Made by a program: the position numbers and the translations under genes
In this document: positions 51,601 through 64,000 of the stretch, piece after piece
Layout: each line of letters starts with the position of its first letter
Numbering within the stretch: the first letter of the stretch is position 1
The notes under the pieces: generated by a model
Databases searched by the model: none
Seen by the model: only the letters and a program-made list of their open reading frames with translations
What the model was told of the DNA's origin: nothing
Assembly: GCA_965202585.1 (NCBI GenBank)
Contig: OZ241828.1
Coordinates: 45,384,001 to 45,448,000, forward strand
Length of the DNA stretch: 64,000 bases
Source of the DNA: Thalia democratica
Taxonomy: Eukaryota
Direction of reading: 5' to 3'

Positions 51601-54600
51601 TACAAAAAGTTTAAATTTATTGATTAGACGAAATCTATTGTTGCTTAAAAAAATTATAAATTATCACTACCATTTTGTAACTTAACATTTTTAAAAATTA
51701 TTTTAAAATACTTAACCTGAAATAAGGTAGCTAATAAAAGTCTTTACATACCATCATACTTTTATAAACAAGAAAAAAATCGGTATTGGTACTCACAAAA
51801 CATATTAAAGACTTCCGTGCAGAAATGAAGTGTTTTAAGAGCATTTTATTAATGTACTTACTTTAGTTTTAATACATTCAATAAGTTATTAAACAACTCT
51901 GAGTATTTAGTTTTTTCTACTTATTTTTTGTATTTTGATTTTTTAAAGGTTTTATTAAAATAATAAAAAAATAAACATTATTTCTTTTATAATATAGGAC
52001 TTATGCCATAAAGCTTAAATAATATTTTGTTATACTATACAAAATACATTAAAAACTTTTGTAAAATTTGGAAAATTAAAGGGCTTGTTAGACTGAAACA
52101 AAATTATACTCTTTATGGATAAGATCAATAAGAAATAAAAATTCATAATGTAATGAGTTTTATAAAATTATTTAAACACATTTTATAAAAAAAAATCGCT
52201 CAAAATATTAGGCCCTAGGACCTGGTGAAGGAAGAAACTTTCGGTTATCAAGTCGTACACGACTTGGATATAATTTCACAGTACAAAAGAAAAGTTAAAC
52301 GCTTATAACATGTTAAGTGTTATTAAATCATATAGCATTGTATATACATACAATGTATATAAGTTATTGAAAGTGGTTCTATTTTAAACGAGCTCAATTT
52401 TACTTCAACCGTTTCTACTTCTTTTACACAGAAGGACAGCTTAAGTGCAATAAGATAAAATTAAATAGGTTAATAGAATTATTTTAGGAGATATACTGGG
52501 ATCAGCTTTAAAAAGTTCTGTTACCCGTGTAACAATATTATACTCACTATAAAGATGATATAGAATCAAGGTAGTAAACCAAATAACAATGAATTAGAAA
52601 ATAAACATGATTTTAAAACTGTGATGTAAAAACTTTACTAAATTAAATTAAAACATCAGATTTGAATAAAAAGAATGTTATAAAGTGTTAAGTGTTAGTG
52701 TTGAAATAATTTTTGGATCATGAGATTTTTTAAATATATAACAACAGGTGTTCTTTGGAACGTTGCCAAGAGTATCCTGAAAACAAAAATGGATATAAAG
52801 TAATAGAAGAAAAAGCATCAGAATGTTGCTTTTCATATAGACTTGTACCCAGCGAATGTAACATCGATAAATGTTCTATTAAACCAACTGCATGTGAATT
52901 TTATGAAGATTTAATAAGTTTTCCTATTGATGAATGTTGTTCTACTTATGAATGTAAATGTAACAAAGAAAAATGTATTAACGCTGGTAGGCTAAACTGC
53001 CCTTATGGTTATGAACGAAAAGTAATTGAAAATGACAAGTGCTGTGCATTGGAAAAATGCATAAAAATTACAATCGGAAATAAAAATGGTTTCGTATCAA
53101 ATTTAGGATCAGATATTAATCTAAACGGCATAATAGGAGAAAATAAAATTATCTTGAGTGATGGCAGCGACAAGGACGGCGAATACCCATACGGTATATT
53201 CAAGGCAACTGGTGACACTAAGGCTGCTTCAGACGCCGAAGCCTACGCTCCACTCGATGTCCACGGTGACTTCAAGGGAGGAGACTACTACGGCAAAGGC
53301 GGAAAGCAAGGTATGATTGTTGTCGGAGGTGCCGATGTTGACGGTAAGGCCCACGCTGACGGCGAGACCGGATACGGCAAGGGCATGTACTACGGTCAAC
53401 CATCCGGCATGATGTGGCCAGGAATGGACGGAAAGATCCACTCTGATGCCTACGTCAACGCTCTCACCGACGGAACCAAGATCATCTTCGGTGATGACAG
53501 CGACAAGGACGGCGAATACCCATACGGTACATTCAAGGCAACTCATGACGCTAAGGCTGCTTCAGACGCAGAAGCCTACGCTCCATTCGATGCCCACGGT
53601 GACTTCAAGGGAGGAGACTACTACGGCAAGGGCGGAAAGCAAGGTATGATTGTTGTCGGAGGTGCCGACGTTGACGGTAAGGCCCACGCTGACGGCGAGA
53701 CCGGATACGGCAAGGGCATGTACTACGGTCAACCATCCGGCATGATGTGGCCAGGAATGGACGGAAAGATCCACTCTGATGCCGACGTCAACGCTCTCAC
53801 CGACGGAACCAAGATCATCTTCGGTGATGACAGCGACAAGGACGGCGAATACCCATACGGTACATTCAAGGCAACTGGTGACGCTAAGGCTGCTTCAGAC
53901 GCCGAAGCCTACGTTCCATTCGATGTCCACGGTGACTTCAAGGGAGGAGACTACTACGGCAAAGGCGGAAAGCAAGGTATGATTGTTGTCGGAGGTGCCG
54001 ATGTTGACGGTAAGGCCCACGCTGACGGCGAGACCGGATACGGCAAGGGCATGTACTACGGTCAACCATCCGGAATGATGTGGCCAGGAATGGACGGAAA
54101 GATCCACTCTGATGCCAACGTCAACGCTCTCACCGACGGAACCAAGATCATCTTCGGTGATGACAGCGACAAGGACGGCGAATACCCATACGGTACATTC
54201 AAGGCAACTCATGACGCTAAGGCTGCTTCAGACGCAGAAGCCTACGCTCCATTCGATGCCCACGGTGACTTCAAGGGAGGAGACTACTACGGCAAGGGCG
54301 GAAAGCAAGGTATGATTATTGTCGGAGGTGCCGATGTTGACGGTAAGGCCCACGCTGACGGCGAGACCGGATACGGCAAGGGCATGTACTACGGTCAACC
54401 ATCCGGCATGATGTGGCCAGGAATGGACGGAAAGATCCACTCTGATGCCGACGTCAACGCTCTCACCGACGGAACCAAGGTCATCTTCGGTGATGACAGC
54501 GACAAGGACGGCGAATACCCATACGGTACATTCAAGGCAACTCATGACGCTAAGGCTGCTTCAGACGCCGAAGCCTACGCTCCATTCGATGCCCACGGTG

Positions 54601-63600: not shown

Positions 63601-64000
63601 GAGGAGACTACTACGGCAAGGGCGGAAAGCAAGGTATGATTGTTGTCGGAGGTGCCGATGTTGACGGTAAGGCCCACGCTGACGGCGAGACCGGATACGG
63701 CAAGGGCATGTACTACGGTCAACCATCCGGCATGATGTGGCCAGGAATGGACGGAAAGATCCACTCTGATGCCGACGTCAACGCTCTCACCGACGGAACC
63801 AAGATCATCTTCGGTGATGACAGCGACAAGGACGGCTCATACCCATACGGTACATTCAAGGCAACTCATGACGCTAAGGCTGCTTCAGACGCCGAAGCCT
63901 ACGCTCCATTCGATGCCCACGGTGACTTCAAGGGAGGAGACTACTACGGCAAGGGCGGAAAGCAAGGTATGATTGTTGTCGGAGGTGCCGATGTTGACGG
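27637..64000 (+). CDS. Giant secreted gel-forming-mucin/vWF-family protein with a novel 111-aa repeat domain (3'-incomplete, >=6,720 aa)
   Basis: Exons (all GT-AG, all phases compatible): 27637-27695, 28235-28251, 28798-28855, 28999-29129, 29592-29796, 30042-30217, 31069-31312, 31695-31905, 32126-32261, 32316-32582, 32716-32947, 33043-33231, 33508-33664, 33999-34183, 34285-34409, 36011-36178, 36263-36399, 38297-38403, 42418-42562, 42799-42950, 43166-43472, 43542-43775, 43831-43947, 44016-44187, 44311-44456, 44547-44668, 44734-44816, 46115-46210, 46446-46675, 46763-50436, 50652-51278, 52748->64000 (20,162 nt). N-terminus [23 protein letters not shown] is a signal peptide. Confidence 0.9.
28798..30217 (+). 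CDS. Three sushi/CCP-like modules (exons 3-6)
   Basis: Pattern C...P.NG...C......C...C..G(Y/F)......C..G.W.....C in [13 protein letters not shown]..., [14 protein letters not shown]... and a 4-Cys first copy. Confidence 0.65.
31069..33110 (+). CDS. D1 assembly: VWD-C8-TIL-E
   Basis: [25 protein letters not shown]; KGLCGVY; [10 protein letters not shown]...[21 protein letters not shown]; CGSSCPKTC...[10 protein letters not shown]. Confidence 0.9.
33043..42950 (+). CDS. D2 assembly and D' (TIL-E)
   Basis: [24 protein letters not shown]; RGMCGNFN; QCMDDVC...[15 protein letters not shown]; CANACGSSC...CVPGCTCP; then [10 protein letters not shown]...[10 protein letters not shown]. Confidence 0.9.
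34909..35648. mobile_element. Intronic foldback element, ~290-bp arms
   Basis: 34909-~35197 is the reverse complement of ~35363-35648 (CTATTTTTGCTTAAG...GGTAAGTGAAGAG / CTCTTCACTTACC...CTTAAGCAAAAATAG). Confidence 0.8.
37451..38012. mobile_element. Two hAT-type MITE copies in inverted orientation, abutting
   Basis: CAGGGATTCCCAAAC...TTTGGGAAACCCTA (37451-37741) with flanks TTCTAAAC/CTCTAGAC, then CAGGGCTTCCCAAAGTGGG at 37757 whose interior is the reverse complement of the first copy. Confidence 0.7.
39416..39621. repeat. Intronic imperfect inverted repeat, ~85-bp arms
   Basis: GAAGATTACTGTATT...GTGAACTTGTTTCACTA...AAACACTTAA vs TTAAGCGTTTG...TAGTGAAACAAGTTCAC...ATACAGTATACTTC. Confidence 0.7.
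40390..40660 (-). mobile_element. Solo Penelope-like pseudo-LTR relic around the hammerhead
   Basis: GC-richer island in an AT-rich intron carrying a PLE-type minimal hammerhead; boundaries approximate. Confidence 0.5.
40453..40494 (-). ncRNA. Canonical minimal type I hammerhead ribozyme
   Basis: Minus strand GCCUGC-CUGAUGA-GUCC(UACAA)GGAC-GAAAC-CG-GUC^GUAGGU: intact core, 4-bp stem II, 6-bp stem I, palindromic ACCGGU in place of stem III. Cut site between 40459 and 40458. Confidence 0.9.
43166..44816 (+). CDS. D3 assembly: VWD-C8-TIL-E
   Basis: [14 protein letters not shown]; WDKGT; EGLCGDFD; [32 protein letters not shown], closely matching the gel-forming mucin C8-3 motif. Confidence 0.92.
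46763..53060 (+). CDS. Six Cys-rich VWC-like cassettes separated by Ser/Gly-rich spacers
   Basis: Repeated C.D..G..R.(Y/F)G..W....C..C.C...C...C...EE....CC...CD...C...C...CC..YEC.C...C...CP.G...CC...C starting at 47504, 48122, 49097, 49724, 50345 and 51178. Confidence 0.85.
52748..64000 (+). CDS. Last visible exon: >=11.25-kb open frame not listed in the ORF track
   Basis: Phase-2 join VVK/CSLERC. The codon frame starting at 52749 runs through the sixth cassette into the repeat array; I found no stop and no indel (333-bp spacing holds throughout). Confidence 0.9.
53160..64000 (+). repeat. 333-bp coding tandem repeat, 32.5 copies in window
   Basis: Consensus [111 protein letters not shown]; about 56% GC by hand count of one unit; copies differ only by scattered substitutions. 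Confidence 0.97.

Follow-up and report, generated by a model that had tools for sequence, protein, structure and literature searches.

The repeat array and the gene around it

The window analysed here is a stretch of 64,000 nucleotides from Thalia democratica (positions 45,384,001 to 45,448,000 of the forward strand of contig OZ241828.1, assembly GCA_965202585.1). Its last part is occupied by a tandem repeat with a unit of 111 residues, which belongs to a giant gene. Judged from its predicted domains, this gene has the scaffold of a gel-forming mucin or von Willebrand factor (VWF), the sugar-bearing Pro/Thr/Ser (PTS) domain being replaced by the 111-residue repeat. The 100 kb downstream of the window were also analysed, and positions above 64000 continue the window coordinates.

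Tandem Repeats Finder delimited a single array at 53151-64000 on the plus strand (period 333, 32.6 copies, 98% matches and no indels), comprising 32 full units of 333 bp and a part-unit of 64 codons at the window end. A previous reading of the sequence alone had described this repeat and placed its start at 53160; the recomputed start is 53151, and the 111-residue repeat itself proved to be real, as a 333-bp array in an open frame that is transcribed and spliced. Stops abound in all frames but one, which stays open for 3,755 codons, from 52734 up to the window end. The window holds the first seventh of the array. The first repeat exon (exon A) stays open from 52734 to 80315 (9,194 codons) and, after an AT-rich gap of 3.2 kb between the two repeat open frames, a second one (exon B) is open from 83533 to 134403 (16,957 codons). 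In the gap, a GTATGT donor follows 80283 and an AG acceptor precedes 83549, and joining the exons at 80283/83549 keeps both the frame and the repeat register, giving 26,130 residues; this inner intron is proposed from the sequence only. The repeat part (53151-80283 plus 83549-133446) amounts to 231.3 units. The whole protein would reach roughly 29,000 residues, an estimate made with the N-terminus lying outside the mapped exons.

The consensus unit contains 23 Gly, 16 Asp, 13 Ala, 10 Lys, 8 Tyr, 5 Met, 3 Glu, 3 His and no Cys, in exact agreement with the counts given in the sequence-only reading, and it also lacks Arg. The charge, described there as balanced, is in fact strongly acidic (19 acidic versus 10 basic residues, net -9, isoelectric point 4.46). 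Ser and Thr account together for 9 of the 111 residues (8%) and Pro for 4 (3.6%), without any PTS tract, and no NxS/T N-glycosylation sequon was found in the unit. With 24% hydrophobic plus aromatic residues and 21% Gly, the unit falls just on the disordered side of the boundary in a charge-hydropathy plot (0.423 versus 0.442). Tyrosine frequently stands in a Gly-Tyr-Gly context and adds up to about 1,800 residues per protein, and each unit has one DxDxDG motif (DSDKDG). The internal echoes pointed out previously are present as motifs, KIHSD included, but the similarity between the two halves of the unit is only marginally above chance: the local score was 45, against 33 +/- 5.7 for composition-preserving shuffles, and 15 of 300 shuffles reached 45 (p ~0.05). 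On the minus strand, an ATG-initiated open reading frame (ORF) of 105 amino acids recurs in 9 of the 32 units between 53229 and 62204; it is a by-product of the repeat composition and no separate gene.

The exons upstream of the array, all on the plus strand, encode the cysteine-rich modules of the scaffold. Cys-rich open frames at 32300-36417 are predicted to encode the earlier D assemblies, in the order C8, TIL, VWD, C8 and TIL (Pfam C8 4.3e-16, VWD 8.5e-8, TIL 6.5e-9), and exons at 43146-44789 a further VWD, C8 and TIL set (4e-13, 1.2e-18 and 3.9e-8, respectively), the D assembly of the putative multimerising N-terminal part. They are followed by a large exon at 46760-50432, with an open frame of 1,234 amino acids that holds about five VWC-like cysteine modules, with linkers rich in Ser, Gly and Thr between them; four of its stretches resemble Pfam VWC with an E value of 1.5e-5, just under the cut-off, and its homologues in other assemblies are 37-90% identical. 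An exon at 50648-51278, with an open frame and covered by RNA contigs, adds a cysteine-rich module and a Ser-rich linker. After a GT..AG intron of 1,469 bases (51279-52747, with the acceptor AG at 52746-52747), the repeat exon begins at 52748-53150 with the last VWC/TIL-like cysteine module, a short linker and, at about 53095-53150, an AT-rich degenerate part-unit that directly precedes the array. Downstream of the array, Pfam identified VWD (2.8e-6), VWC (1.7e-12) and Cys_knot (2.5e-11) domains.

The contigs of four RNA runs were compared with positions 50400-53600. The joint 51278 to 52748 was present in contigs of two runs from two studies, X5 (in a contig of 6,601 nt) and X7, and a second joint, 50432 to 50648, was seen in X5. 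As these contigs join 51278 to 52748 across GT..AG, the repeat exon is spliced on the plus strand to the cysteine-rich scaffold exons. The k-mer depth of the repeat contigs in X5 was about 2,500-12,000, compared with 23 on the unique flank, a ratio that fits about 230 collapsed copies and that, being based on contigs, serves as a consistency check only. In addition, three protein fragments from ocean metatranscriptomes (MERC), P0001, P0002 and P0015, are 90-95% identical in the repeat frame. Two metatranscriptome fragments depart from the regular arrangement: P0002 lacks 14 residues between two DGK repeats, and in P0016 the Cys module is followed by a single unit and then immediately by a degenerate one, resembling that with which exon B begins. 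Length variation, a shorter relative or an assembly artefact might account for these fragments.

Variation within the array and the homologue family

Two types of unit that differ at five positions are present in the gene. Type A makes up all or nearly all of the units inside the window, with a mean nucleotide identity of 97.8%, and type B makes up almost all of exon B. In the roughly 147 type-B units DYYG is changed to DNYG and KAHAD to KAYAD; DNYG was counted in about 135 units of the gene. Among the units of exon A (53151 to 80283), 18-21 recur as 26-29, mean identity is highest between units lying 8 or 13 places apart (98.2% and 98.7%, against about 97.8%), and B-type units leak into the 3' end.

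The codon usage of the repeat is strongly biased: Lys is encoded by AAG at 10 of 10 positions, Tyr by TAC at 8 of 8, Phe by TTC at 4 of 4 and Asp by GAC at 13 of 17. The GC content at third codon positions is 0.60 in the repeat and 0.17-0.25 in the flanking exons (46760-51278, and 0.17 in the Cys part at 52748-53150). This switch is abrupt and occurs inside one gene, within the repeat exon (52748-53500 compared with 46760-51278). The preference for C-ending codons suggests heavy translation, with selection acting on the unit and its result spread by homogenisation; biased gene conversion may be an alternative cause.

The unit belongs to a small family. A HMMER scan of 1.84 billion representative proteins gave nine matches, one of them a spurious repetitive protein, and a profile search added a few further relatives; when the profile search was repeated from the divergent members, the family did not grow further. 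Besides the near-identical fragments, the relatives comprise four divergent lineages (P0011/P0012/P0004, P0013, P0014 and P0009), all from marine metatranscriptomes except P0009. The latter (NCBI MEL6706587.1) is a hypothetical protein on a contig of 641 nt filed under a Bacteroidota metagenome-assembled genome, and is almost certainly mis-binned animal DNA.

In every relative that spans more than one unit the period is exactly 111 residues. Five homologue sequences aligned without gaps to the T. democratica unit, at 27-39% identity and with 24 invariant positions, which include M1, WPG/YPG, DG-x-YP, APFD-x-H and V-x-G. The sequence-only reading had judged the unit too complex for a simple elastomer, and this constrained module of fixed length bears it out. 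The number of aromatic residues stays constant at 12-13 per unit, while the Tyr:Phe ratio goes from 8:4 to 3:9. Tyr and Phe alternate at four of the eight Tyr positions, and a non-aromatic residue (Gly, Asp, Ser, His or Asn) replaces Tyr at three others; at least three Tyr per unit are left in every homologue. Only one of the three His is invariant (that of APFD-x-H), the other two being replaced by Thr, Ala or Tyr. The net charge is always negative (-7 to -12) and Cys is always absent, but DSDKDG is not kept, as the corresponding stretch reads DGITGFDG, DAVPGFDG or DSATGFDG in the homologues. Taken together, this comparison implies that selection preserves the length of the unit, the aromatic count, the Gly, Pro, Asp and Ala anchors and the acidity, rather than the Tyr pairs or the spacing of the His.

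The position of the repeat in the gene is also shared. On L021 and L022, two scaffolds of the Tara metagenomes, there is a homologue of the cysteine scaffold, with 43% identity over the 1,234-residue VWC exon and the same exon order, and a P0013-type 111-residue repeat begins right after the last Cys module; in another species, then, the repeat sits at the same point of the gene. At three further loci with a scaffold homologue (L023-L025), no repeat of the 111 family was found within 10 kb.

Outside this family the unit has no recognisable relative in the collections searched. A Pfam match, which the sequence-only reading had named as counting against its view, was not found on the unit; the best was CBM-like_2, at 20.3 bits for a cut-off of 27, and no stretch passed alone. 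A profile search of the PDB gave a best E of 0.12, and neither a PDB sequence search nor a feature search of the ESM Atlas returned anything usable. The 111-residue unit is a new, taxonomically narrow repeat family placed in a known kind of scaffold.

Two other regions of the window, away from this gene, were recorded. A GC-richer tandem satellite at 16857-17450 and 20791-21120, with several frames open on both strands (its units read ...HGASLWHSDKTTRCVTLARRVTLAQRQNDTV...), is probably non-coding. A GC-richer block at 2369-4891 (0.40-0.46) contains one ORF rich in Pro, Ser and Gln, another with an internal repeat some 45 amino acids long and a third that by eye resembles a retroviral-type aspartic protease; on this by-eye reading the block is probably a retrotransposon remnant.

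A probable spacer module and its alternatives

We consider it probable that the repeat serves as a polyanionic spacer, free of sugars, in a giant secreted polymer, plausibly that of the pharyngeal feeding net. Because the Tyr pairs and His motifs are not conserved, the module looks like an acidic spacer studded with aromatic residues rather than a dedicated cross-linking or metal-binding unit, and the absence of NxS/T sequons together with the scarcity of Ser and Thr makes it unlikely that the central domain is sugar-coated like that of a mucin. The 111-residue module would take the place of the O-glycosylated PTS domain, its Asp side chains providing charge and hydration, and its regularly spaced aromatic and hydrophobic residues might act as weak sticky contacts, both among chains of the protein itself and with particles. 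Mucins and VWF share a scaffold, form disulfide-linked multimers and differ mainly in their central modules (PMC6109156). Chains of the T. democratica protein could likewise be joined by disulfides, tail to tail through the cystine knot and head to head through the D assemblies. Between these ends the central domain, with about 2,000 net negative charges per chain, would behave as a hydrated and extensible spacer, and a contour of up to about 9 micrometres per chain would allow long hydrated fibres or a net to be formed. By analogy with Ciona, where VWF-like genes are endostyle-specific (PMC8462739), the likeliest material would be the pharyngeal mucous feeding net produced by the endostyle.

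Several observations weigh against this proposal. With respect to the tissue and the material, the RNA evidence comes from plankton samples and not from dissected organs, and proteomics of the ascidian feeding filter yielded no mucus-specific peptides (bioRxiv 10.1101/2025.01.21.634085). The ratio of nonsynonymous to synonymous changes per site was 0.77 for the distinct variants among 228 units, that is, purifying selection on young variants in the array is weak. Finally, an exact length of 111 residues kept without an indel at ~30-40% identity is unusual for a disordered spacer, and may hint at a defined structure that AlphaFold2 missed with only 13-16 sequences aligned. Two papers on the genome and transcriptome of salps contain no mention of a mucin or VWF gene.

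The fixed length speaks for a folded domain, for instance a beta-rich one that folds or stacks only with Ca2+ or on assembly, so that the protein would consist of about 231 beads or form a stacked rod. The gapless family with its 24 invariant positions and constant aromatic count would fit such a domain, as would the presence of one DxDxDG motif per unit in T. democratica, and extracellular beta-sandwich domains are typically of this length. On the other hand, structure prediction gave it no support. AlphaFold2 returned a mean pLDDT (predicted local distance difference test score) of 27.9 for two units of the T. democratica gene, with an alignment of 16 sequences, and of 24.5 for three units of the more hydrophobic homologue P0011, with an alignment of 13 sequences; almost no secondary structure was present in either model. 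Moreover, no relative of the unit turned up in Pfam, the PDB profiles or the Atlas, its composition falls on the disordered side in the charge-hydropathy plot, and DxDxDG is absent from the homologues. The beta-solenoid that the sequence-only reading had suggested also gets no support from these predictions, for which the alignments were shallow; no short internal period of the RTX type, such as GGxGxDxUx nonapeptides, was found in the unit, nor a Pfam match, and its internal similarity is marginal. We likewise dropped the idea that the Asp-rich stretches are cadherin-like, EF-hand-like or RTX-like, as their motifs are not conserved and match no profile. We regard a folded domain as unlikely, yet the shallow alignments and the lack of indels at ~30-40% identity led us to retain, as the chief rival of the spacer, a module that is folded or becomes ordered on assembly.

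Less probable still is the possibility raised previously that the unit is a substrate for oxidative cross-linking, through 3,4-dihydroxyphenylalanine (DOPA)-quinone or dityrosine, or coordinates metals through His and Asp, the secreted material being hardened or glued in this way. In its favour, the eight Tyr per unit often stand in Gly-Tyr-Gly as in resilin, at least three persist in every homologue, and animal haem peroxidases (PF03098) are encoded at four or more loci of the genome. The tunicate endostyle, in addition, has thyroid-like, iodine-handling functions (PMC8462739). However, the paired tyrosines and spaced histidines that had been taken as the signature of this chemistry do not hold up: half of the Tyr positions interchange with Phe and three turn non-aromatic in the homologues, the first Tyr pair is already gone in the type-B units of the same gene, and two of the three His are not conserved. 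The unit is also acidic, unlike the mussel adhesive proteins, which are basic and rich in Lys and DOPA. A search of the genome for tyrosinase (PF00264) gave no match, and neither did the control search; the outcome was the same for a GH6 domain, looked for as a marker of tunicates, and its control. The numerous Asp might still bind cations, and the Tyr that are left might be acted on by a peroxidase. Of the peroxidase genes, about four form a tandem cluster at 10.65-10.74 Mb (G000:C2).

The weakest explanation, that a non-coding satellite or an error of assembly is open in one frame by chance, can draw on the very high identity of the copies, on an array that runs off the window and on the fact that such repeats are often soft-masked as 'unknown' in salp genomes (PMC10686999), but 26,130 codons open in one frame only over two exons that would join in frame, a codon bias of the kind made by selection on translation and, above all, the splicing to scaffold exons in RNA from two studies and the orthologous repeats that keep frame and period at ~30-40% protein identity refute it and leave it practically no probability.

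Returning to the secreted acidic spacer, we would also mention a bolder version, which we hold to be a long shot. According to it, the protein would be the main fibre polymer of the net, the module would become ordered and stack only on secretion or cation exchange, the unit and the chain length (~9 micrometres) would set the mesh, and Tyr would be oxidised to dityrosine or iodotyrosine by an endostyle peroxidase. If this were true, the net-making and the thyroid-like roles of the endostyle would be tied to one substrate.

Salps and their relatives filter a large share of the ocean microbes through mucous nets. The gene described here is a candidate net polymer of at least 26,000 residues, whose charge would be carried by some 4,400 acidic side chains instead of sugars. 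Recent work attributes the capture of cells to unknown surface properties of the mesh and of the cells, and not to size alone (PMC10949910). The repeat is expected to yield about ten highly repeated tryptic peptides.

Comparison with known systems

Resilin and the mussel foot proteins resemble the T. democratica repeat in being Gly-rich repeats with frequent Tyr in Gly-Tyr-Gly. In contrast to them, the T. democratica Tyr are not conserved, the unit is a module of 111 residues instead of a short peptide, and it is acidic.

The gel-forming mucins and VWF (MUC2, VWF and Ciona Ci-GFM1) share with the T. democratica gene the N-terminal VWD-C8-TIL assemblies and the VWC modules, end like it in VWD, VWC and a cystine knot, and have very large exons for a single, huge and repetitive domain in the middle of the protein. 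The difference resides in this central domain, which is not Pro/Thr/Ser-rich but a Cys-free domain of Asp, Gly, Ala and aromatic residues; besides, no VWA domain was seen. As described, CiVWFL of Ciona is likewise a tunicate secreted protein with a VWF/mucin scaffold that is expressed in the net-making organ (PMC8462739), and no acidic repeat of 111 residues has been reported for it in the literature searched.

The same kind of scaffold with other fillings occurs both in the same genome and elsewhere. A giant gene 1 Mb downstream (L019) has the same kind of scaffold and an essentially Cys-free repeat of 102 residues, similar in composition (acidic, Gly/Ala/Asp plus aromatics), and in another assembly the homologue P0021 (L020:18989-25436) has a repeat of 206 residues, also of Gly, Ala, Asp and aromatics, after the same Cys module. 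When the 102- and 206-residue repeats were compared with the 111 family, hhalign gave a probability below 1% and tblastn found nothing at E<1e-3. That different repeats fill the same slot points to a shared compositional constraint. The gene also shows that a central domain made of protein only is compatible with the mucin/VWF scaffold, and that related species fill this slot with non-homologous repeats of similar composition.

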